Of a stretch of 64,000 nucleotides of DNA, positions 6,601 to 61,591 are shown in pieces. The stretch lies in contig NC_043005.1 of NCBI RefSeq assembly GCF_006345805.1, positions 101,060,001-101,124,000 of the forward strand, read 5' to 3'. The position numbers and the translations under genes were made by a program. The DNA comes from Octopus sinensis. Its lineage: Eukaryota. Under the pieces are notes generated by a model, which was not told the origin of the DNA, made no database searches, and saw only the letters and a list, made by a program, of their open reading frames with translations. Numbering within the stretch: position 1 is the first letter of the stretch; every line of letters starts with the position of its first letter.

Positions 6601-6639
6601 AGTCCTATGTAAGTATGTATATATATATATACATATATG

Positions 6640-6869
6640 CTCTTTTACTTGTTTCAGTCATTTGACTGTGGCCATGCTGGAGCACCACCTTTTAGTAGAG
6701 CAAATCGACCCCGGGACTTATTCTTTGTAGGCCCAGTACTTATTCTATCGGTCTCTTTTGCCGAACTGCTAAGTGACGGCGACGTAAACACACCAGCATC
6801 GGTTGTCAAGCAATGCTAGGGGGACAAGCACAGACACACAAACATACACAAACATACACACACACACAC

Positions 6870-16398: not shown

Positions 16399-18233
16399 TT
16401 AACTGCCCAAAGCACCCTTTACACAAGGGCACTTTGCAAAAGGAACCCATCTCAATCTGATACACTTTTGCAGTTTTTCCTTTTTTACAGCAAACAGTCT
16501 GCAAACTTTTTTCCTTCTATTTATCTTTTCAACTTTATGAATGTCAGTATTTTCTCTGTTGACATCTGCCTCAGTTAATTTTGTTTTTCTCCCAGTTCTC
16601 TGCTTTCTAGAAGAAAAGCCCTCGCGTAACTGAGATGTGATGTCAACCCAAAATTTCAAATGGTCGTAGTCCTTTGGTGGCGGAGGTACTTTGTGGATTT
16701 TTACATATGCAATATATGAATTAACTATAGTTAAATCAACTTAAAACCACGAAATATACCTCCACCATTTCTTTCCAGGTCGACCAACTGGGTAATATGC
16801 CTGACATTGGTCAAATTTTCCAACCCCACTCATACATTTGTTATACAAATATTCACTAGGGGTTTCCCCTCTGCACCAACACCAAGTTGTTCATTAGTAG
16901 ACAGAAATAAAATCTGTCTTTTGTCTTTGAAAGCAGTAGCTAATAAGTTTTCCGTTTGCATTAGTAAAATTTCTCCTCTTCTTTTTTTTAAATTTTGTTT
17001 TCATTTCACAGGGTAAACCTTTACGGTTACCCATAACAGTACTGCACAGGTAAGTACTTACATGGGCAAGATTTTCTGCCAAAGCCACTGATGAAAAAAA
17101 ACGGTCAAAATAGAGATGCCGGTGCTGATTGTGAAATGGTTCAGTAAGAGACCATGCTACATCATGTCCCAATCCATTTCTTCTGTTTCCATTATATTTA
17201 TTACCTGTGTAAACATCGAAATCTACACTATCCAGTGTCTGATTCCCAAACTTCCCATACCTTGATCCCCCATTTAGTGGGTTTGACAGGCATGTACTGC
17301 TGAAAATGTACTCTGCCCTTATAGCCTTATCATGGCTTCATCTACACTGAGATTTTTCCCAGGTAGATACACAGTTTAATAACTATTAAGGAGTAAATTG
17401 ATTACAGGACGCACTTTGTATAGGGGGTCGTATTTTGGGTCGTTTTTGCTGAGGGCATTAGCAGAATCAATTAAATGTAAATACTGAGATATTTTCGAAT
17501 ACCTCATCTTTGACATTATACTTCAGATATATGGATTATCATACCTTATATCGACTCCAGTAGGAAGCTGTTTAACACCAAATATTAATTGTGAAAAATG
17601 CTCTTTTCCGCAATATAAGTTGGCTGCCATAGTGGATGTCCATGAATAGAAATTATACGTTGTGCATATTTGTTTGTTTCCTTCATAATATTTTCAAAAA
17701 AGCTTTCTGGTAAAAATATAAATTGATAGTCCAATGGTTGAGCATCAGGAGGTAAATTGTGTTGTGCACCAGTGTTTTCTGTGAAATCAGGAATAGTGAA
17801 TGTTACTGTATTCTTTGACCATGTTGCCATGTTTACAATATCATTTTCATCACTTTCATTCTCAAAATCTTCCTCGTCCTATGAATATTCTTTAATATCA
17901 AAATCAGATTAGTCCGAAGACAAAATACTCGTTTCCAGCACGTAAAACGTACCATCCGATTGTGGCTGTTTGCCAGCCTCCCCTGGCCCCTGTGCCGGTG
18001 GCATGTAAAAAGCACCCACTACACTCACGAAGTGGTTGGCATTAGGAAGGGCATTCAGCCGTAGAAACATTGCCAGATCAGACTGGGCCTGGTGCAGCCT
18101 TCTGGCTTCCCAGACCCCAGTTGAACCGTCCAACCCATGCTAGCATGGAAAGCAGACACTAAATGATGATGATGATGATGATATTGTCAAGAGTAAAACC
18201 TTCAAAGTTGGAATCGCTACTTACTGACACCAT
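16399..18233 (-). pseudogene. piggyBac transposase, frameshifted and interrupted by a SINE
   Basis: MVSVSSDSNFEGF start; ETNKYA; SVDEAMIGYKGRVHFQQYMPVKPTKWG; LYFDRFFSS...NRKGLP; KFDQ...KKWWRY; Cys-rich end FCKVPLCKGCF. Confidence 0.9.
17930..18180 (+). mobile_element. RTE-tailed repeat 'family C' nested in the piggyBac ORF
   Basis: gtggttggcattaggaagggcat...catgctagcatggaaagc + (GAT)n. Confidence 0.85.
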
Positions 18234-25736: not shown

Positions 25737-26300
25737 TTAACGTCCGCTTTCCATGCTAGCATGGGTTGGACGGTTCAACTGGGGTCTTGGGAGCCCGAAA
25801 GCTGCACCAGTCCAGTCAGATCTGGCAGTGTTTCTACAGCTGGATGCCCTTCCTAACGCCAACCACTCCGAGAGTGTAGTGGGTGATTTTATGTGCCACC
25901 GACACAGGTGCCAGACGAGGCTGGCAAACGGCCACGCTCGGATGGTGTTTTTATGTGCCACCGACACAGGTGCCAGACGAGGCTGGCAGACGGCCACGCT
26001 CGGATGGTGTTTTTATGTGCCACCGACACAGGTGCCAGACGAGGCTGGCAGACGGCCACGCTCGGATGGTGTTTTTATGTGCCACCGACACAGGTGCCAG
26101 ACGAGGCTGGCAGACGGCCACGCTCGGATGGTGTTTTTATGTGCCACTGACACAGGTGCCAGATGAGGCTGGCAACGGCCACGATCGGATGGTGCTTGTT
26201 ACGTGCCACAGCACGGAGGCCAGTCGATGCGGTACTGGCTACGGCCACGTTCGGATAGTTTTCTTATGTGCCACGTGCCACCGGCACTGGTACCACAAAG
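25706..26300 (-). mobile_element. RTE-tailed family C element with expanded internal 62 bp minisatellite
   Basis: (CAT)n + tttaacgtccgctttccatgctagc...ggatgcccttcctaacgccaacc; units start at 25891, 25953, 26015, 26077, 26139. Confidence 0.9.
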
Positions 26301-26376: not shown

Positions 26377-26545
26377 ACATACTGGAGTAAGCACATAAAT
26401 GTGAAACAAGTTGGTAAAAAGAGTACTCAAATACCAGAGGTAGAGTAATATGCTTTATCTAAAAGCAGCAGAAATATAACAAAAGAAATTCACATTCCCA
26501 TTCGTTGGACAATTTTGTTAACAAAACTGTCCTACAAATGGATTT
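26377..26545. mobile_element. Penelope-type fragment of the 28320/42835 family, ending in a short palindrome
   Basis: tactggagtaagcacataaatgt... shared with 42835; palindrome ccattcgttggacaattttgtt/aacaaaactgtcctacaaatgg. Confidence 0.7.
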
Positions 26546-27304
26546 TATACTACAATAGAGTCAATCCAGTTAAGAATTGGAAGCAAGCAGTAGGATACCA
26601 TTTTGCCAAAATATCACAAATCTACCCACCACCTCTGACAGTAAAAACAACAGCCATCCCTTGCAAGTGTGAATGACCAGGTAACATGTACCATGTTTCT
26701 GCTAGCTGTTGAGGCACCAATGTAGTTGCGAACAGACTCTGACACCCTCTTAGACCTCCTACTCTTAAAGTAGAACACTCAGAATGGGACAGATGGGGAG
26801 AGAGAGAGAGACGGACAGAGGGGGGGATAAAGAGAGAGAGACAGACAGAGTGAATGAGAAAGAAAGAGAGAACTGCATCAGAGTGAGGCTGGGAATCATT
26901 ACAGTTGAAATGACTTGAGCAATGTAATATGAATGCCTTTGCTCAAGAATAAAAGATTGGTGGAGACAGGAATTTGCCGTTGTGAATTCCAACACCCTAA
27001 TCACCAAGCATGGATGTGCACAAATAAGAAACCCCACAATATTAGAATAAAGGAGGTTTTCTTTTATCTTTGTTTACTTGCGTCAGTCATTGGGCCGTGA
27101 CCATGCTGGTGCTCCATATTGAAGGGTTTTGGTTGAACAAATTCAACCCAGTACTTATTTTGCTTTTCAAGCGTGGTACTTGTTCTATTGATCTTTTCTG
27201 GCCAGCTGTTACGCTATGAGGATATAAACAAACCAACTCTGGTTGTCAAGTGGTGTGGAGGACAAGCATACAGAAAGGTATATTCCCATTTTTATATATA
27301 TATA

Positions 27305-27997: not shown

Positions 27998-28001
27998 GTA
28001 T

Positions 28002-28038
<37 letters not shown>

Positions 28039-28193
28039 TATATACATATATATACATATATATACACATACATATACATACACACATATATATACATATA
28101 TATATACACACACATATATACATATATATATAAATACACACACACATATATATATACACATATATATACATATATATACACATATATATACAC

Positions 28194-28234
<41 letters not shown>

Positions 28235-28270
28235 TATGTACATATATATATTTATATACACACACACATA

Positions 28271-28313
<43 letters not shown>
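27998..28313. repeat. (TA)/(CA) compound microsatellite
   Basis: Direct reading. Confidence 0.95.
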
Positions 28314-28319
28314 TTCATT

Positions 28320-28538
28320 AATAAAGTTGCAAAGGTATCACAAAAACTGTTACTCTGAGTTTCACGTTCCTGTTCATCAGACAGTTTTGATTGGGAATGT
28401 CCAATGAACGGGAACGTGAAACTCTGAGTAACAGCTTTTGTGATGTCATTGCAGCTCTATTAACAGAGCACATTACTCTACCTCTGCTATTCCAATACTT
28501 ATTTCTTCCACCTCATGTTACATCTATGTGCTTACTCT

Positions 28539-28545
<7 letters not shown>
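28320..28545. mobile_element. Penelope-type foldback mini-element
   Basis: Inverted arms about 28343-28377 and 28404-28439; tail is the reverse complement of 42835-42910. Confidence 0.8.
28343..28388 (-). ncRNA. Type I hammerhead ribozyme fold (predicted)
   Basis: AAAACUGU-CUGAUGA-ACAGGAACGU-GAAA-CUCAGAGU-A/ACAGUUUU: 8 bp stem I, intact core, mini stem II, stem III ACU/AGU, GUA site. Confidence 0.7.
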
Positions 28546-28577
<32 letters not shown>

Positions 28578-28589
28578 TCTTTTTACTCT

Positions 28590-28809
28590 TTCCTCTTTTA
28601 CTTGTTTCAGTCCTTTGACTGTGGCCATGCTGGAGCACCACCTTTAGTCGAGCCAATCGACCCCAGGACTTATTCTTTGTAAGCCTAGTACCGATTCTAT
28701 CAGTCTCTTTTGCCGAACCGCCAAGTTACGGGGACGTAACACACCAGCATCGGTCGTCAAGCGATGTTGGGGGGGACAAACACAGACACACAAGCACACA
28801 CACACACCT

Positions 28810-30892: not shown

Positions 30893-31280
30893 TGAAGGGT
30901 TTTAGGGAGTTCCTGAGGAGATTTCATCACAAAATGCCAGAGATCCAGGACAATGCCCCAGTCCACAATTCCATCTGATTAACTTAATAAAGATGGGTAT
31001 CAAAACCGTCTCTCACCTTCCCTATTGTCCAGACATTGCTCCCTGTGATTTTTGGTTGTTCTCCAAGCTAAAGGAGAAGACGAAGGAGGCTGTAACAAGG
31101 GTACTGAACACTTTCACTTCATAGGGAACATCCAAGGGGTCTTCATAAAGTGGCTGGAGCACTACAACACGTGCATTGAAGTCAGAAGATTCTTCTTTGA
31201 AGGAAATTAGAGTCTTGCATTTCTTTGAAATTAATAATTTTCTCTCTTGAAAACATCTGAAACCTTTTGGAATGCACCAT
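30893..31280 (+). mobile_element. mariner 3' fragment
   Basis: QDNAPVHNS...KMGIKTVSHLPYCPDIAPCDFWLFSKLKEK (YSPDLAP motif), TIR-like end. Confidence 0.8.
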
Positions 31281-35244: not shown

Positions 35245-35369
35245 CTGATCAACAGAAACATTTTCCACGGTGAAATTGAACCAGACTCGGAAGCGAGGAT
35301 TGCAAGTGTCAGGTCGGATAAACAGATCATATTCGTACTCCGTTATGTAATCAACACGTCCAAGATTTC
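35245..35369 (-). CDS. AGBL4: AGBL4/CCP6 internal coding exon, equivalent to vertebrate exon 3
   Basis: Acceptor ctcttccatctccAG, donor GTaatt; 125 nt, phase 1-0, (G)NLGRVDYITEYEYDLFIRPDTCNPRFRVWFNFTVENVSVDQ; splices in frame to the 54782-54907 exon to rebuild the CCP FESGNL motif. Confidence 0.95.
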
Positions 35370-35822
35370 CTGGAGATGGAAGAGTTTAAAATAAAAAGCA
35401 TCTTGAGAAAAGTGTAAAAGTTAGAGAACAATAAAGTTGTTAGGAAATTATGGATTAGCATCATGTGATGGTATATCTGATAATGTGTATAAAATTGATA
35501 TTGTGCCTGTATGGGTGTTTATATAAAGGAGATGCGATAGGGAACAACCATATCGAGCTTGTTTTGTTTTATTTGTGTTTTTGCCTGATTAATGCTCTGA
35601 AATATTTCTAAAAAAACGAAGAAGAAGAAGAACAGAATAAATTCAATAGATTGATTTTGTTTTTCATGCCAAGTAGGAAAAGATAAATCTTCTGTAAAGG
35701 CCAAAAAGTTTAATTTTACTTCTGTTTAAATTTAAGTGGACTGAATTCTTGCTTATTTTTCAACACAGCAGAAAAGTTTATCCTTATTATCACCATCCTC
35801 TCCCCTCATTATTATTATGATT

Positions 35823-37884: not shown

Positions 37885-38040
37885 TAGGGGCAGGTGTGGC
37901 TGTGTGGTAACAAACTACGTTCCAAACACATGGTCCTGGGTTCAGTCCCACTGTGTGGTGACTTGGCATGTGTCTTCTGCTGTAGCCTCAGACCAACAAA
38001 AGCCTTCTCAGTGGATATTTTACATATATACAGGCATACA
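37885..38040 (+). mobile_element. SINE family A 5' fragment nested inside the Helitron
   Basis: ggggcaggtgtggctgtgtggtaac...ggttcagtcccactg. Confidence 0.75.
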
Positions 38041-38099
38041 TACATATATATATACATGCATACGTACATATTCGGCATAAACACTCTACCACTACAACT

Positions 38100-40996
38100 A
38101 ATAACTGTTGGGAACACTTTCAAACCTGCCTTACATTCGAACCGGAATCTCAACGCCCGAGTTTTCCATCTGAAGTTAATCTCTCTCATGGAGCTCATAC
38201 AAAAAGGACAAGTCTTTGAGCCCATACAATGTGACATGTACACAATTGAGTGGCAAAAAAGGGGCCTTCCACATGCTCATATCCTGCTTTGGCTCTCAGC
38301 GAAGATCAATTCCAATGACATCGACAAGATAATCTCTGCAGAGCTTCGTGATCCAGCTTTAGACAAAGAACTATACAAAATAGTTAAAGCAAACATGGTA
38401 CATGGTCCATGTGGGCGTGGATTCAACATAAACACACCATGCTTAAAGGACAGCATATGTTCAAAAAGATTTCCAAGGAGGTTCCTACAAGAAACTCAGA
38501 CAGGTGCTGATGGGTGTCCATCAGAAAACCAGAAGATGGAGGTTTCACAGCAACTATCAGACAGCACAATATTGATAATAGATGGATTGTTCCATACTGC
38601 CCACTCCTGTCAAAGACTTGCAATGCCCACATCAACGTTTTGCAACTCCGTTAAATCCATCAAGTACGCTTGCAAATATGTAAACAAGGGCTCTGACGCT
38701 GCAATGTTTGGACTTCAACAAGAATACTGCCAGGATGAGGTGACGCATTATCAGGTGGGACGGTACATAAGTAGCACACTAGGATTTCTGGTGCATCTTT
38801 GGCTTTCCAATTCACCAACGACACCCCGCCATTCAACAGCTCGCAGTGCACCTGGAAAATGGTCAAAGAGTGTACTTCACCGATGCTAATGCTTCTCTGT
38901 TGGTAGAGGAACCAAGGGATAGGACACTCACTGCATTCTTCAAGCTTTGTCAAGTGGATCCATTCGCTCAAACCTTGCTGTATCCACAGATTCCATCGTA
39001 GTACACTTGGAATGGAAAAAAATGGGCCCCACAGAAAGCAGATCAAAATGTTCATAGATACCCTGGCATTAAGTTTCACACTTGCCTTGGGCGAGTATAG
39101 TGCATCCCACTCAACAAGAGTGCTTCTACCTTCGTCTACTACTGCATGAGGTCAGAGGGCCAACGTCTTTCCAGGCTCTAAAAGCCATTCATGGACATGT
39201 CTGCACAACATACAGAGAAGCCTGCTATCGACAAGGTCTGTTAGAAGATGGTGCACAATGGGATGCAACTTTAGAAGAGGCTGCTTTATCACAATCACCC
39301 AAAAGTCTCAGGGCACTATTTGCAGTATTACTACAGGCATGCGAACTGTGTGATCCGGCCACTCTATGGCTCAAATATAGAGACAACCTGGCTGAAGACT
39401 TTCCGTGCCAAGCTCAACTGCTCTATCCTGACATGGAGGGTACCAGCAATGAAATCTATAACAAAACACTCATTGACATTGAAGACAGAATTGCTAAACT
39501 GGGTGGAAATGAATTGTCGACGTATGGCCTGCCACAAGCATTCAGGTCAGGGTCAAATAGCCTTCCCACTGCTGTCATTCGTGAAACAACCTACGACACT
39601 CAAGCACTTTCAAAGTACATTGTTGAAAATGAGCCTAAATTACTTCCGGACCAGCTGCAGGCCTACAGAACTATTCTTAACAGTGTACGCCAACGCAAGG
39701 GACAAATCTTCTTCCTCAATGCTCCTGGAGGGACAGGAAAAACATTTATTACAAAGCTTCTCCTTGCAGAAGTTAGGCAGAATCAGGACATTGCAGTAGC
39801 TGTAGCCTCCTCTGGCATTGCAGCTACTTTGTTACCTGGTGCCAGGACAGCACACTTAACTTTTAAACTCCCTCTCAATTTAATAGCATCCGAAATTCAA
39901 CATCAACAAAAGCTCAGATCAGGGACAAGTACTTAAAATGTGTCATCTAATTGTCTGGGATGAGTGCACTATGGCTCACAAGGGAGCTTTGGAAGAATTA
40001 GATAGAGCCCTGAAAGACATCCGAGACTGTCAGGCTGCAATGGGAGGTGTAACTCTTCTGTTGTCAGGTGATTTCAGGCAAAATCTTCCTGTCATTCCAA
40101 AAGGCACCAGAGCCGATGAAGTCCAAGCATGCCTAAAGTCCTCTACCCTGTAGCATCATGTTACAATCCTCAGTCTCACCACTAACATGAGAGCTCAGCT
40201 ACACGGCGACAAAATGTCCACAAAGTTTGCACAGGACATTTTGACACTTGGTGGAGGCAAGATGCCTCTCGATGCTGCAGGACAAATGGAAGTGTGGTCA
40301 TTTTCCTCTGTTGTTAATTCTGTAGATGACCTCAAAAACAAAGTCTTTCCCAACTTCACACAAAACTACCAAAATCACAATTGGCTGTGTGAAAGAGCAA
40401 TATTAGCTCCAAAAAACGTCGCTGTTAACAAAATTAATCAACAGCTAATGCATTCTCTTCCCGGCACTATACACACTTACAAATCTGTTGATACAATTCC
40501 AGATATAAATGAAGTTGTGAACTATCCTCCTGAATTTCTCAATTCACTGGATCCTCCTCGACTACTTCCACACATATTAGCACTTAAAGTTGGAACTCCT
40601 ATAATGCTACTCCGCAATCTGGAACCACCAAGACTTTGCAATGGAACACAACTGGTGATAAAGAAAATGATGTCACACGTTATCGAGGCGATCATTCTTT
40701 CTGGATGTGGAAAAGGTTATGGCGTCTTTATTCCAAGAATTCCTCTTACTCCATCAGGAGCAGAAATTCCATTTACATTCAGAAGACTGCAATTCCCCCT
40801 TCGTGTCAGCTTTGCCATGTCCATTAACAAATCTCAGGGTCAAGCCCTCTCTGTAGCTGGTCTTCTCTTGGAAGAGCCCTGCTTCTTATATGGGCAACTG
40901 TATGTTGGCTGCTCAAGAGTAGGAAGCAAAAGAAACCTTTTTGTATATGCTCCACAAGGAAAAACAAGGAACATTGTTTACAACGAGGTGTTATAA
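38100..40996 (+). pseudogene. Helitron Rep (HUH) - PIF1 helicase, frameshifted
   Basis: EWQKRGLPHAHILL, MVHGPCG, KYACKYVNKG; APGGTGKTF, VASSGIAA, LIVWDECTM, LSGDFRQ, RLCNGT, FAMSINKSQGQ. Confidence 0.92.
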
Positions 40997-42834: not shown

Positions 42835-42837
<3 letters not shown>

Positions 42838-43039
42838 TGGAGTAAGCACATAAATGTAAAACAAGGAGGAAAAAAGAGTACTCAAATACCAGAGGTAGAG
42901 TAATATGCTTTATTTAAAAGCAGCATAAATATAACAAAAGCTGTTACTCAGAGTTTCATGTTCCCGTTCGACAAACGGGAATATGAAACTCTGAGTAACA
43001 GCTTTTGTTATATTTATGCTGCTTTTAAATAAAGTATAT
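42835..43039. mobile_element. Penelope-type foldback, same family as 28320, hammerhead core truncated
   Basis: Arms 42903-42968 and 42974-43039 around a 5 nt loop. Confidence 0.8.
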
Positions 43040-44900: not shown

Positions 44901-45059
44901 ATATATATATATATTTGCTATGGTACTTGAACTGCTAACCTTAAAGAAAGCCTAAATTTGCTTTAGTACAGAGTACTGTAATTTAGGGTGAACATGCAAC
45001 ATGAGTAATTCACAATGTGAATAAACAAAACAAACAAAAAACAATATGGCCCTTTTATG

Positions 45060-45445
45060 CTTTCACTCTTTCACTTGTTTCAGTCATTTGACTGTGGCCA
45101 TGCTGGAGCACCACCTTTAGTCAAATCAAATCGACCCCAGGACTTATTCTTTGTAAGCCTAGTACTTATTCTATCGGACTCTTTTGCCGAACCGCTTAGT
45201 TACGAGGACGTAAACACACCAACGTCAGTTGTCAAGCGATGTTGGGGGGACAAACACGCAAACATATATATATACATATATACGATGGGCTTCTTTTAGT
45301 TTCCATCTACCAAATCCACTCACAAGGCTTTGGTCGGCCCAAGGCTATAGTAGAAGACACTTACCAAGGTGCCACACAGTGGGACTGAACCGGGAACCAT
45401 GTGGTTCATAAGCAAGCTACTTACCACACACCCACTCCTACGCCT
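45060..45445 (-). mobile_element. SINE family A, full length
   Basis: Complete head, core and tail. Confidence 0.88.
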
Positions 45446-47687: not shown

Positions 47688-48168
47688 ACATACATACATA
47701 TATATATACATATATATATACATATACATACATATATATACATTATATATATACATACATATATAATATACATACATATATACATATATACATCATATAT
47801 ATATATAATAACATATATACATATAATATACATACATATATACATATACATATATATATACATACATATATACATATACATAATATATACATATATCATA
47901 CATATACATATACATATATATATACATACATATATATATTATACTATACATATATATATATACATACACAATATATATACATACATATATATATATACAT
48001 ACACATATATATACATACATATATATATACATACACATAATATATATACATACCATATATATATATATATATATATACATACATATATATACATATATAT
48101 ATACATACATATATATATATATGTGGTGTGTGTTATATATATATATTATATATATATGTATATATATA
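47640..48168. repeat. Long (TA)/(CA) compound microsatellite
   Basis: Direct reading. Confidence 0.95.
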
Positions 48169-49457
48169 CGAGGGGTGTTCAATAAGTAATGCCCCTGACC
48201 CACTTCCCATAGCAGTAGAGCAACAAAACTTGGCACAGTTATTAGTCTTTTTCTACATAGGAACCACCCAGAGTTACGCATTTCTCCCATCGTTTGATGC
48301 AGCTCTGGAGACCGTTTTTGTAGAAGACCCCAGCTTGGTCCTTCAGCCACGACGTGACTTCAGAAATCAAGGCTGCATCATCTGGGAAACGCTTTCCTTT
48401 CAAAAACAACTTCATGGCTGGGAAGAGGTGAAAATCAGAGGGTGCAAGGTCAGGAGAGTAAGGGGATAGGGAAGGAGTTCATAGCCGCACGCCTGTGCTT
48501 CTGATCTGGTGACACGCGAGTTGTGGACCGGAGCGTTGTCCTGCAAGAGGAGGATGCCTTTGCTGATCTTGCCCCCTCTTGATTTTGATAGCTTCTCTTA
48601 ATTTCCTCAGAAGTGAAGCATAATAGGCTCCTGTAATTGTGGTACCCTTTGCCAGGAAATCTGTCATCACTACTCTGTCCTGGTCCCAGAAGACTGTGAG
48701 CATGACCTTGCCAGCGGAGGGCTGCACCCTTGCCTTCTTTGGAGGAGGTGAGTCACAGTGCTTCCACTGCATTGACTGGGCTTTGGTCTCTGGATCATAG
48801 TGATGGACCCAGATTTCATCCTGTGTAATCAGTCTTTTGAAAAATTTTGACTCATCTTCTTGGCACATCTCCAAATTCATCTTCGAGCACTCGACGCGTT
48901 CTTGCTTCTGGAAAGGTGTGAGCAACCTGGGAATCCATCTGGCAGACACCTTTTGCATATGCAAATGGTCATGAATGATAGTTTCCACAGACCTGGTACT
49001 AATCTTGACCTCATGGGCTATTTGGCGAATAGTTATGTGTCGATCTTCCAAAATGGCAGCCTCAACTTGACGGACAGACGTCTCATCAACGGCAGAAGGG
49101 GGCGACCAGATCTGGGAGCTGTTTCCACAGAGTTCCGACTATGTTTGAATTCACGATGCCAGCGTTTTACAAGGTCATATGATGGGGCATCATCACCATA
49201 AGTTACTTTCATTTCATCAAAAGTCTCCCGTGGTGAGCATCCATTCAAATACTAAAACCGGATCACTGCTCGACACTCAACAGGCTCCATTTCACACTTG
49301 ACTCAGTCCAAACACCTGTAAATCAGATACCACAATTAGTTCAGAGCTATAATTTGCTATTTAATCTATAGAGATATAAATAATTGCACATGCAAAATTT
49401 CAGCTAGATCAAACAACTGCAAGTGGATCAGGGGCATTACTTATTGAACGTCCCTCG
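48169..49457 (-). mobile_element. Full-length mariner transposon (1289 bp), TA-flanked
   Basis: 37 bp TIRs cgaggggtgttcaataagtaatgcccctgacccactt with 3 mismatches between ends. Confidence 0.95.
48242..49290 (-). pseudogene. mariner DD34D transposase with 1 stop and 3 frameshifts
   Basis: MEPVECRAVIRF*..., WIPRLL, ITQDE, QDNAPVH, YSPDLAPSD; 34 residues between D2 and D3 after frame repair. Confidence 0.93.
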
Positions 49458-49490
<33 letters not shown>

Positions 49491-52930: not shown

Positions 52931-54781
52931 AAAGTTAATCCAAGCCTGCATAGAAATGATGATGATGATGATGAAGATGACAATAACAAAATTGAGTAGG
53001 AGAAAGGTTCTTATGTTAAGGGATCTGACATTTAGATTTAAAATCTGTTTTGTCCACTTTCCGCAGCCATAAAATCACATCTCTCACAGGCATAATTTCA
53101 AATTAATTTTAGAGTAAGAGTTTATTTCATATCACTGCAGATAGAAGTTGAAACCATTACAATCGGTTTTAATACCGTTGATACTGCAGCCAGTATTTTA
53201 ATTATGGGAAAAAATAGAAGTGGGTAATAACTCATACAGCATACAAGAGAATCTTTCGTCCTCCATGCATGGTATCTCTCTAAAACCCCCAAAATGCTTT
53301 GTAAAGTGGTTAGGGGTAGGAGGGGCATTCAACCACAAAAAGCATGTCAGACAGGAATGTACAAGCACGACATGGACTTTGCAAGGTAGAAATGGCTCTT
53401 TAGTACTCCCAAATGGAACAATTTCTCTAATATTACAAACAAAATAAAATACCCCAAATCCACACAGTAAAACATACCCAACAACAAATTTGGCTGGTTG
53501 TTTTGTTTTTTTTAAATTTTGAGTTAAATGAGGTGGACAACAATGAATATCAACTTTTCTAACGCATGCCAGCACAAAAAAATGGATGTAAATTGTTTAT
53601 GGCTCTCAATATCTGTTGTCTAATACTGAGGAGTATTGTTCTGCATTCTAGAAGGATCCCAACACAAGAATGGAAAGCCATTAGCAAAATGATGAAAAAT
53701 ATAGAATAGAAATTGTGATCACAAAAATTCCTGTCAATTCCACACTGACAAAAACAGAAATGCCAAAGTGACAATTTCTCACTTTGTCTCACTTTAAGAT
53801 GCTATAAGGCCTCCTGTGTATGTGTTTCATATGCGTTTTAAAACCAGTTACCTGAAAATAAAGGTGTTTTTTGTGCCACCTATGGAGTCCAATTTTTTTC
53901 CTGCCTATCATACAATTTCCAGTAACAATGTTCAGCAGTAGTAATTATCCTCCGCATCATTACTAATTTATTTTCTATCTGAAATAGCAGCTTTTAGCAA
54001 AACAATAATTCACCAAGAAGCAATGATTCTTCAATTTATCTGCCCAACACTTTAAGTACTACTGTTTGTATGTATATCATAGCTTACAGCAAAACATAAT
54101 TACAAATAATATATTGAGTGTGTGACTGATAGCATAGAGAATAAAGACTAATTTACTTGAGACACAGTAACACACACAAACACACACGGAATGTGATTAT
54201 ATACATGTATGTGTGTGTGTTTATAATCCTTTCACTGAATTGTCCATATGCTGCTAAATATTTGCTGGTAAATCATCTAAAAAATATTAACTGAAGAAGT
54301 AGAGCTTTATGGAGACACAAACTTGAATGTTGTTACCTGATGTTGCACAATGTTGGATGCCAAGTTATACAAAATACCTCCGTTCTAAATGGAAAATACA
54401 CTGCAAAAATAATATGCGGCAATACTCAAGCTATCTGTTCAATGCATCCTTATTACTAAATGTGTGTAAGAGTGGCTGTGTGGTAAATAGCTTGCTTACC
54501 AACCACATGGTTCCGGGTTCAGTCCCAGTATCATGTTAGAGGTACATATTTTAATTTCAAACATTTTGTTCTCTGAAATTTGCCACAATAGAGAGGTGTT
54601 TGGTGTTTTTTCTGTCTTAAACATGTTATTCTTGCACAGGTTCATTTTACACACAGTTAAGAATATTTCAGTATTCTATCAACTGGTACAGTTTCATCTA
54701 TAAATGTTAATACAGTCCCCAAATTAGAAACTGATCAACAAAAATAATATTAAGAATTGCAACAGGAAACTGAATATTTAC

Positions 54782-54907
54782 CACTTTCAAAGCAAGCATC
54801 AAATGTCAAATGACCTTGTTTTGGTTTGCCAAAATATCCCTGTGGCACAACTGTCAACTTATTAACATTGCCAACCAATGTCTCTTCGCTGATATCAGAA
54901 TCACTAC
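54782..54907 (-). CDS. AGBL4: Cytosolic carboxypeptidase 6 (AGBL4/CCP6) internal coding exon, equivalent to vertebrate exon 2
   Basis: Acceptor tttgtatattttgcAG, donor GTaaat; 126 nt, phase 1-1, open frame SDSDISEETLVGNVNKLTVVPQGYFGKPKQGHLTFDACFES(G), matching from memory human AGBL4 GGNVSKYIVLPTGYCGQPKKGHLIFDACFESG. Confidence 0.93.
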
Positions 54908-59139: not shown

Positions 59140-59547
59140 TCTTTACTCTTTTACTTGTTTCAGTCATTTGACTGCGGCCATGCTGGAGCACCGCCTTTAG
59201 TCGAGCAAATCGACCCGAGCACTTATTTTTTATAAGCCTAGTACTTATTCTATCAGTCACCTTTGCCAAACCGCTAGGTTACAGGGACGTAAACACACCA
59301 GCATCGATTGTCAAGCAATGTTGGGGTACAAACACAAACACACAAACATATACACACACATACACATATATATACATATATACGATGGGCTTCTTTCAGT
59401 TTCCGTCTACCAAATCCACTCACAAGGTTTTGGTCGGCCCGAGGTTATAGTAGAAGAAACTTGCCCAAGGTGCCATGCAGTGGGACTGAACCCAGAACCA
59501 TGTGGCTGGTAAGCAAGCTACTTACCACACAGCCACTCCTGCGCCTG
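59140..59547 (-). mobile_element. SINE family A, full length
   Basis: Complete head, core and tail. Confidence 0.88.
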
Positions 59548-60828: not shown

Positions 60829-61210
60829 ATATATGGGCAATATGTCTTTATTTGGAAGTGGAGTACCAACGGGGTGGTCTACTATGTAAATGAAGAGCAG
60901 GGGTTGAATATTGACTGATTTATTATAAATCAGGTGTTGAAACAATTAAAGTGGCATACTGGCAGGGCTGTTAGGGCATCAAACAGACTACCTCAAATTT
61001 GTTCTAGTTCTCTGAACTCTGATTTCAAATCTGCTCAAGGTCAGTTTTCTGTTTCATCCTTTGGGGGTCAATGAAATTCACAGAAGTCTAAGTGGAACAT
61101 TAAACAGCATCAACCAGTCCTGGAGGGCCTACACACCCACCCCAACAGATGCAAACGATGACAAAGTTAGCAGCTGACTTGCATCAGTTAAAAAAGTCAT
61201 ATGCCTATAC

Positions 61211-61591
61211 TCTCTTTTACTTGTTTCAGTCATTTGACTGTGGCCATGCTGGAGCACCACCTTTAGTTGAGCAAATTGACCCCAGGACTTATTCTTTGTA
61301 AGCCTAGAACTTATTCTATGGGTCTCTTTTGCTGAACCGCTAGGTTACAGGGACGTAAACACACCAACATTGGTTGTCAAGCGATGTTGGGGGGACAAAC
61401 ACAGACACATACATACATACATATATACGGCGGGCTTCTTTCAGTTTCTGTCAACCAAATCCACTCACAAGGCTTTGGTCAGCCCGAGGCTATAGTAGAA
61501 GACACTTGCCCAAGGTGCCACGCAGTGGGACTGAACCCGGAACCATGTGGTTGGTAAGCAAGCTACTTACCACACAGCCACTCCTGTGCCT
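61211..61591 (-). mobile_element. SINE family A, full length
   Basis: Complete head, core and tail. Confidence 0.88.

Follow-up and report, generated by a model that had tools for sequence, protein, structure and literature searches.

A hammerhead-like motif in an intron of the octopus AGBL4 homologue is very probably a pseudo-hammerhead that arose by mutation in a foldback repeat

Results

Genetic organization of the locus

The window analyzed here is a stretch of 64,000 nucleotides of Octopus sinensis DNA (contig NC_043005.1), and all positions refer to the full length of this stretch. The candidate motif and the exons that define its genetic context are located on the same strand:

54780..54905, minus strand, N-terminal coding exon of AGBL4/CCP6 (..LTFDACFESG), with 166 homologues, detected by tblastn
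~35257..35370, minus strand, next AGBL4/CCP6 exon (NLGRVDYITEYEYDLFIRPDTCNPRFRVWFNFTVENV; NLGRVDY..VENV), detected by tblastn and translation
28343..28388, minus strand, candidate hammerhead-like motif, recognized from its sequence and as the sole descriptor match in the window

The identity of the host gene was deduced from an exhaustive representative search that was followed by an evaluation of Pfam domains and cluster names. The long homologues of the exon at 54780-54905 contain the domains Pepdidase_M14_N and Peptidase_M14, and bear the names cytosolic carboxypeptidase 6 or ATP/GTP binding protein-like 4; when the 42-70 aa AGBL4 exon was used by itself, Pfam and PDB searches yielded nothing useful. 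The exon at 35257-35370 lacks a start codon and was hence not called as an open reading frame, and a tblastn search for AGBL4 residues beyond ~95 gave no match in the window. Judged from these homologies, the host gene is an AGBL4/CCP6 homologue that carries the candidate on its sense strand, and the orientation proposed in the first-pass annotation agrees with the location of both exons on the minus strand. The candidate lies ~6.9 kb downstream of the exon at 35257-35370 in the following intron, for which the designation 'intron 3' is plausible.

Several vertebrate homologues of the exon at 54780-54905, P0339 and P0357 among them, are annotated as isoforms of the BEN domain-containing protein 5. 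In these BEN-annotated proteins the carboxypeptidase N-domain is fused to a BEN domain, and they look like read-through or nested-gene models of AGBL4 and BEND5.

Structure and rarity of the hammerhead-like motif

The minus strand of 28388..28343 reads AAAACTGT-CTGATGA-ACAGGAACGT-GAAA-CTCAGAGT-A-ACAGTTTT, corresponding to the RNA AAAACUGU CUGAUGA ACAGGAACGU GAAA CUCAGAGU A ACAGUUUU. According to this reading, the motif can be divided into the following structural elements:

5' strand 28381-28388 and 3' strand 28343-28350, minus strand, stem I, 8 Watson-Crick base pairs
28374-28380, minus strand, C3-A9 box CUGAUGA
28364-28373, minus strand, stem-loop II, A10.1-U11.1 and C10.2-G11.2, then an A·C mismatch and a GGAA loop
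28361-28363, minus strand, G12-A14 (GAA)
28352-28360, minus strand, stem-loop III, 3 bp (ACU/AGU) with a 3-nt CAG loop
28351, minus strand, A17 of the GUA triplet, with cleavage predicted between 28351 and 28350

The invariant hammerhead core is present in the candidate (C3 U4 G5 A6 N7 G8 A9, G12 A13 A14, A15.1-U16.1 and H17), with A15.1 at 28360 pairing with U16.1 at 28352, and the open helix I gives the motif a type I topology. The complete type I core that the first-pass annotation had described on the minus strand, with all core nucleotides, an 8-bp stem I and a 3-bp stem III, can accordingly be read at 28343-28388, and the placement of A17 at 28351 agrees with the cleavage site that had been predicted after GUA. 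The annotated A·C mismatch of stem II was likewise recovered at the position where the sister arm of the foldback has a G-C pair, the plus strand of this arm reading CCAATGA and ACG-GGAA-CGT. A tertiary contact between a loop or bulge of helix I and loop II is needed for the activity of hammerheads at cellular Mg2+ concentrations; stem I of the candidate, as drawn, forms an unbroken 8-bp helix without an internal loop and with a flanking U bulge.

A permissive descriptor (CUGANGA, stem II of at least 2 bp, GAAA, stem III of at least 3 bp, H17 and stem I of at least 4 bp), which was set just loose enough to admit the candidate site, matched both strands of the 64-kb window only once, at the candidate itself. 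Four matches were obtained in 300 dinucleotide-preserving shuffles, and their stem I never exceeded 5 bp. The candidate match therefore surpasses the random expectation for one window, an excess that arises because the motif sits in a palindromic repeat, by which the stems are supplied free. Hammerheads with one core mismatch were found at a rate of 0.41 per shuffled 64-kb window, or 0.027 when stem I comprised at least 7 bp, and an extrapolation of this rate to a genome of a few gigabases gives about a thousand one-mismatch near-hammerheads by chance. The near-miss represented by the repeat family described below is therefore unremarkable at genome scale. A one-core-mismatch match of this chance kind (~0.4 per window) is located at 31183-31236 on the plus strand of the window, with the box CAGAAGA and a 5-bp stem I.

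The foldback and its repeat family

Read on the minus strand, the candidate is the right arm of a ~150-bp foldback. This foldback is one member of a repeat family, the copies of which were delimited by means of BLAST and nhmmer:

28311..28540, minus strand, repeat copy 1, with a long arm of ~175 nt (28398-28540) and a short inverted arm (28311-28392)
28398..28440, minus strand, left arm of the foldback (the sister arm), upstream and transcribed first, complementary to the entire hammerhead-like segment
27999..28310, no strand assigned, TA/CA-rich microsatellite adjoining the short-arm end at 28311, with pure (TA)n at ~28275-28310
28541..28574, no strand assigned, (TA)n adjoining the long-arm end of copy 1
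42837..43034, plus strand, repeat copy 2, a near-perfect palindrome (137 nt at 95% identity)
26383..26543, plus strand, repeat copy 3, with an internally deleted long arm and a 23-nt short arm
L005 12632-12716, solo repeat unit of O. bimaculoides, found by BLAST/nhmmer in fetched octopus DNA

The arms of copy 1 are joined head to head across a predicted hairpin loop of 14 nt, the core of the foldback extending from 28318 to 28463, and a self-BLAST of this copy aligned 146 nt at 79% identity. The centre of copy 2 is deleted (cccgtt-cgaca-aacggg), leaving both arms without the CUGAUGA box and the 5' strand of stem I; this copy is flanked by (TA)n on the left and by TA-rich sequence on the right. 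The palindromic centre of copy 3 consists of acaattttgtt joined to aacaaaactgt. A 24-mer of the arm sequence matched the window four times versus none in the shuffles.

The repeat unit begins with AACAAAACTGTCCGACGAACGGGAACGTGAAACTCTGAGTAACAGCTTTTGT... and extends over ~175 nt in the long arm, the outer end of which (..GTGCTTACTCYRG) lies against (TA)n. The inverted short arms of 23-70 nt are arranged head to head with the long arm, and those of copies 1 and 2 stop at approximately the same internal point (..TAAATAAAG) against TA repeats. The solo unit of O. bimaculoides shares its starting point with the palindrome centres (AAACAAAACTGTCC), and its tail lies against (TA)n. Every arm other than the copy 3 short arm has (TA)n or TA-rich sequence next to its tail end, and head-to-head inverted pairs are present at three of the four loci of this small sample of seven arms. 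The octopus DNA beyond the window comprised three loci with a total of 75 kb, reached via a Helitron helicase ORF, and contained one family member; a weak nhmmer match (L004 18277-18307) and a BLAST match (L004 36336-36367) were discarded as unrelated or low-complexity sequences. Direct tandem copies of the repeat unit are absent from the window, the arm pattern GGAAYRTGAAACTCWGAGTAACAG had no match in JGI metagenome contigs, and the open frame of the repeat had no match in the protein database at E<=10.

From the arrangement of its ends, the element can be classified as a short non-autonomous interspersed repeat of Octopus, in which the head is constant and the tail adjoins (TA)n; retroposition may be the mechanism by which it spread. 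Several other assignments were considered and rejected. A SINE head derived from a tRNA, 5S or snRNA gene had no Rfam match at E<=10 over 28000-28800, and the hairpin is not located near a CTRR terminus as in a Helitron end. The element does not resemble a Stowaway-like MITE either, as its termini are not mutual inverted repeats and the long arm has ~85 extra nucleotides.

Two further kinds of repeats occur in the neighbourhood of the family members. A tandem array of a 62-bp unit (6.3 copies with 91% matches) is present at 25882-26274 of the window, ~100 bp upstream of copy 3, and is G+C-rich compared with its surroundings. An abundant short repeat containing ..TTCAGTC.TTTGACTGTGGCCATGCTGGAGCACC.. 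(translation FQSFDCGHAGAPP) occurs at 27057-27116, at 28581-28640 and at many more positions, e.g. 6613-6816, 45021-45296, 59172-59447 and 61104-61298. This abundant repeat with TTCAGTC is probably an octopus SINE, and one of its copies lies immediately upstream of the foldback-flanking (TA)n.

The core box in the repeat family and CpG decay

The box that corresponds to C3-A9 of the hammerhead could be compared in five informative arms:

CTGATGA, candidate (copy 1 right arm)
CCAATGA, sister arm (copy 1 left arm)
CCAACGA, copy 3 long arm
CCTACAA, copy 3 short arm
CCGACAA, O. bimaculoides solo unit

The dinucleotide U4-G5 is present in one of the five arms, the candidate alone. The majority consensus of a MAFFT alignment is AACAAAACTGTC-CGACGA-ACGGGAACGT-GAAA-CTCTGAGT-A-ACAGCTTTTGT, with ..GTCCGACGAACGGGAACGTGAAACTCTGAGTAACAGCTTTTGT around the box. 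It already contains the complement of stem I, a 3-bp stem II, GAAA, a 3-bp stem III and GUA, and it differs from a hammerhead in one core nucleotide, carrying C4 in place of U4. The states of the box in the individual arms therefore point to CCGACGA as the ancestral box, and the ancestral sequence, with C4, was not a canonical hammerhead.

At core positions 4-5, one arm of copy 1 has TG and the other has CA, while CG is kept in the O. bimaculoides unit. Since the two arms were presumably identical when the inverted pair was formed, the TG/CA contrast between the arms of a single insertion is a signature of CpG decay. The copy 1 arms differ at 13 of 70 sites (18.6%), and 11 of these 13 differences are transitions, including a second TG/CA pair. 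Throughout the window the observed-to-expected ratio of CpG is 0.40, compared with 1.27 for TpG and 1.31 for CpA, a depletion that is consistent with methylation-driven CpG decay in an intronic region. The consensus, the TG/CA pair and the depletion of CpG therefore indicate that U4 and U7 were made after the insertion by C-to-T changes at CpG sites. The caution expressed in the first-pass annotation, namely that CUGAUGA could stem from CpG decay of CCGACGA, is borne out by the comparison of the arms, the MAFFT consensus and the CpG ratio. The comparison of core positions with a family consensus, which the same annotation had suggested as a check of the ribozyme, turned out against it, as the consensus reads CCGACGA and not CUGAUGA.

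Tests for selection on the fold and comparison with Rfam models

In an alignment of six arms, compensatory changes were found at none of the 14 hammerhead pairs, and paired cells amounted to 81.3% versus 81.7% in column shuffles. The changes in helix II are all of the CpG type, the C-to-U changes leaving wobble pairs and the G-to-A changes breaking the helix; stem II is broken by a G-to-A change in three of the six arms, the candidate included. Selection on the hammerhead fold has thus left no apparent sign in the aligned arms. The 5' ends of the repeat units (copy 3, the L005 unit and the right arm of copy 1) are located 5' of stem I and not at the predicted cleavage site; therefore, the insertions of this family carry no discernible trace of self-cleaved RNA intermediates.

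The Rfam models Hammerhead_1, Hammerhead_3, Hammerhead_II, HH9 and HH10 gave no match at the gathering score in the whole window, and the hammerhead models gave no match at E<=10 when searched on 28000-28800 (801 nt) or on 28336-28395 alone (60 nt). The closing pair of helix II is A10.1-U11.1 in all six aligned arms and not G10.1-C11.1, which is highly conserved in natural hammerheads, those of the Penelope type included (PMC4209133). Cleavage in vitro has been reported for hammerheads whose helix II is reduced to one or two pairs (PMC544870), and GUA belongs to the natural cleavage triplets (PMC1636495).

Predicted folding of the motif and of the foldback

The minimum free energy structure of the isolated 46-mer has -8.3 kcal/mol (z = -0.78), and in this structure the core CUGA is paired with UCAG of loop 3, a complement that is exclusive to the candidate arm and results from its T-to-A change. 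The hammerhead secondary structure of the 46-mer was calculated at -2.2 kcal/mol, with an ensemble fraction of ~8e-6; as drawn, it gains no net stability from helices II and III, and its penalty in the isolated state is ~7 kcal/mol. A stretch of 181 nt folded into one long hairpin with a minimum free energy of -89.4 kcal/mol (z = -14.2). According to nearest-neighbour estimates, which ignore tertiary contacts, helicases and RNA-binding proteins, this hairpin is favoured over the hammerhead by a very large margin, i.e. by 40-48 kcal/mol in transcripts that end at the last hammerhead nucleotide and by 53 kcal/mol when the full foldback is present. In the presence of the upstream arm, the ensemble fraction of the hammerhead decreases to values between 1e-29 and 1e-38. 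The first-pass annotation had also considered that the long foldback may sequester the motif, and the preference of 40-53 kcal/mol for the hairpin, along with the earlier transcription of the upstream arm, bears out this assumption.

Comparison with known hammerhead systems

The features of the candidate were compared with those of known systems. With the hammerheads of Penelope-type elements (Cervera & de la Peña 2014, PMC4209133) it shares the type I order, a short and weak helix III and a near-palindromic 15.2-16.2 segment. The minimal hammerheads of Penelope-like elements exist as thousands of dispersed truncated copies, including opposite-strand pairs 100-700 bp apart; single motifs display little or no activity in vitro, and they contain an unpaired nucleotide between A9 and 10.1 as well as a helix II of 6-8 bp (PMC4209133). 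In contrast, the octopus candidate has an A-U closing pair and no unpaired nucleotide after A9, and helix II comprises 2-3 bp in every arm. Moreover, the octopus consensus has C4 and not U4 and shows no covariation. Inspection of the window ORFs by eye revealed no reverse transcriptase/GIY-YIG ORF to which the motif could be linked, an absence that is not decisive, as such motifs are solo at most of their genomic sites (PMC4209133). Microsatellites, (TA)n among them, are the preferred targets of Penelope-like elements, and their insertions are often accompanied by an inverted, 5'-truncated copy (PMC8557442); the octopus repeat resembles them in its location at (TA)n and its inverted arrangement, a likeness of behaviour that does not prove ancestry.

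The metazoan non-LTR retrozymes (Cervera & de la Peña 2020, PMC7229834; Li et al. 2026 preprint) are likewise short, AT-rich and non-autonomous. Their units of ~170-400 nt contain a type I hammerhead and are present in molluscs such as mussels; they are organized as direct tandem repeats that give rise to circular RNAs, and the ends of a unit coincide with the cleavage site (PMC7229834; Li et al. 2026 preprint). In the octopus, by contrast, units occur singly or as head-to-head inverted pairs, and their heads lie 5' of stem I.

Among the copies of foldback or inverted-repeat transposons, two inverted copies in one transcript likewise result in a long predicted hairpin, and the coincidental hammerhead consensus in one arm is all that sets the octopus locus apart from this ordinary class. 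The amniote intronic hammerheads (Rfam Hammerhead_HH9 and HH10) likewise lie in introns of protein-coding genes in sense orientation, which brings up the possibility that the pre-mRNA is cut co-transcriptionally. These amniote motifs, the subject of work by de la Peña and García-Robles in 2010, are reportedly ultraconserved and are said to combine stable helices and tertiary loop contacts with efficient cleavage. The octopus candidate, in contrast, occurs in a single arm of a single repeat copy, is sequestered thermodynamically and has no match to either model.

Discussion

Origin of the motif

The data presented here indicate that the motif is very probably a pseudo-hammerhead, i.e. a sequence-level match that arose by mutation in a repeat and does not represent a ribozyme. 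The locus is a copy of a short non-autonomous Octopus repeat that often occurs as a head-to-head inverted pair and thereby generates a foldback, and the family consensus stops one core nucleotide short of a hammerhead, with C4 and not U4. Deamination of CpG sites in the right arm after the insertion most likely converted CCGACGA into CTGATGA and so completed the core, while the same process probably broke stem II by changing G10.3 to A. During transcription of the AGBL4 pre-mRNA, the left arm would be synthesized first and the emerging right arm would zip into a hairpin of ~60 bp, with the consequence that the hammerhead junction would never be populated. We infer that no cleavage takes place in vivo and that the only likely consequence at the RNA level is a long double-stranded hairpin in the intron, which may be edited or diced. 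A near-miss in a repeat that multiplied, with subsequent CpG decay, suffices as an explanation of the motif. Some points run counter to this interpretation: random sequence rarely yields the exact motif with its 8-bp stem I (0/300 shuffles), the consensus forms a striking three-way junction only one nucleotide off the hammerhead core, and the bare 46-mer might show some activity at high Mg2+ concentrations (PMC544870, PMC1636495). It is unlikely that the motif represents the de novo birth of a hammerhead core, in which CpG deamination completed CUGAUGA...GAAA...GUA and the isolated right arm cleaves with Mg2+ in vitro. If this were true, a hammerhead could arise easily and repeatedly in repeat-rich genomes, and a fraction of the other Octopus family copies would have made the same transition.

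Alternative explanations of the locus

The locus might also be regarded as the relic of a hammerhead-bearing retroelement, either the terminal repeat of a Penelope-like element or a retrozyme-like derivative, in which U4 decayed to C in the master copy; the present copy would then have regained the canonical core by chance and may cleave weakly when isolated, without a role in vivo. The three-way junction of the consensus with its hammerhead order of elements and its single core mismatch is in accordance with such a descent, as are the outer ends against (TA)n and the head-to-head inverted pairs that are also known from Penelope-like elements (PMC8557442), the minimal hammerheads of which are widely dispersed, truncated and equipped with a short helix III (PMC4209133). 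Yet the extra nucleotide after A9 is missing, helix II has an A-U closing pair and 2-3 bp instead of 6-8 bp, covariation and Rfam hammerhead matches are absent, and no Penelope-type reverse transcriptase/GIY-YIG ORF was recognized by eye among the window ORFs of at least 55 aa. About a thousand one-mismatch near-hammerheads are also expected by chance in such a genome. On balance, we consider this descent quite unlikely.

A functional intronic ribozyme that cuts the AGBL4 pre-mRNA co-transcriptionally in intron 3 and thereby lowers or regulates the expression of the host gene, as proposed for HH9 and HH10, is very improbable. The complete core and its location on the sense strand of the host gene would fit this role, and a passage of PMC7229834 mentions that amniotes have sense intronic hammerheads. 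These features are opposed by a fold that is disfavoured by 40-53 kcal/mol against the hairpin with the first-transcribed arm, by a core that is a recent mutational accident unique to the candidate arm, by the lack of G10.1-C11.1, the instability of helices II and III and a stem I in which no internal loop or bulge for a tertiary contact is visible, and by the failure to match a covariance model. Furthermore, introns of vertebrates show a depletion of hammerhead-bearing retrozymes, suggesting that active copies are selected against there (bioRxiv 10.64898/2026.07.22.740005). The suggestion of the first-pass annotation that an active fold could cut the intron co-transcriptionally is thus left unsupported in view of the derived box, the sequestration by 40-53 kcal/mol, the missing Rfam match and the missing covariation. 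The hairpin itself could be the relevant feature of the locus, providing a near-perfect intronic duplex of ~60 bp as a substrate for A-to-I editing or for the formation of small RNAs. Extensive RNA editing is a characteristic of cephalopods, and inverted repeats are the usual substrates of ADAR enzymes. The high stability of the foldback (-89.4 kcal/mol, z = -14.2) is in favour of such a role, as is a weak, sub-threshold likeness to a microRNA precursor (mir-196, 34 bits versus a gathering score of 55.4) that reflects the hairpin shape. The arms have, however, drifted 18.6% apart without compensation, which argues against selection on the duplex, and the Rfam matches are far under the threshold. 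A dedicated role of the hairpin is accordingly rather unlikely, and it would be compatible with the origin of the motif as a pseudo-hammerhead.

Interpreted as a pseudo-hammerhead, the motif adds one decayed repeat copy to a long octopus intron, and little changes otherwise. The example demonstrates that descriptor-level hammerhead matches in repeat-rich genomes need to be checked against the family consensus, the surrounding fold and a covariance model. It also shows how a near-miss sequence can be turned into a canonical ribozyme core by CpG decay, which bears on the number of hammerhead-like motifs to be expected without selection. An active sense intronic ribozyme in an invertebrate gene would have extended the phenomenon known from amniote introns, but the evidence does not support it.

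Other mobile elements in the window

In addition to the repeat family, the window contains other sequences that resemble mobile elements. A mariner-type transposon with the domains HTH_48 and Transposase_1 and broken ORFs is located at 48162-49464 on the minus strand. It shares 91-92% DNA identity with the regions L001 9498-10794 and L002 1422-2725 of long contigs from ENA assemblies; besides the mariner, these two contigs have nothing in common with the window, and no copy of the repeat family was found in them; they do not represent host DNA. This similarity suggests a mariner lineage that is shared across unrelated genomes, possibly as a result of horizontal transfer. A Helitron-like element at 37888-40993 on the plus strand comprises three large ORFs with a Rep-like segment (KRGLPHAHILLWL) and a Pif1-type helicase, and the best protein matches of the helicase ORF were found in Octopus bimaculoides (84%) and O. 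sinensis. ORF fragments resembling a piggyBac transposase were recognized by eye from the translation at 16897-17878 on the minus strand.
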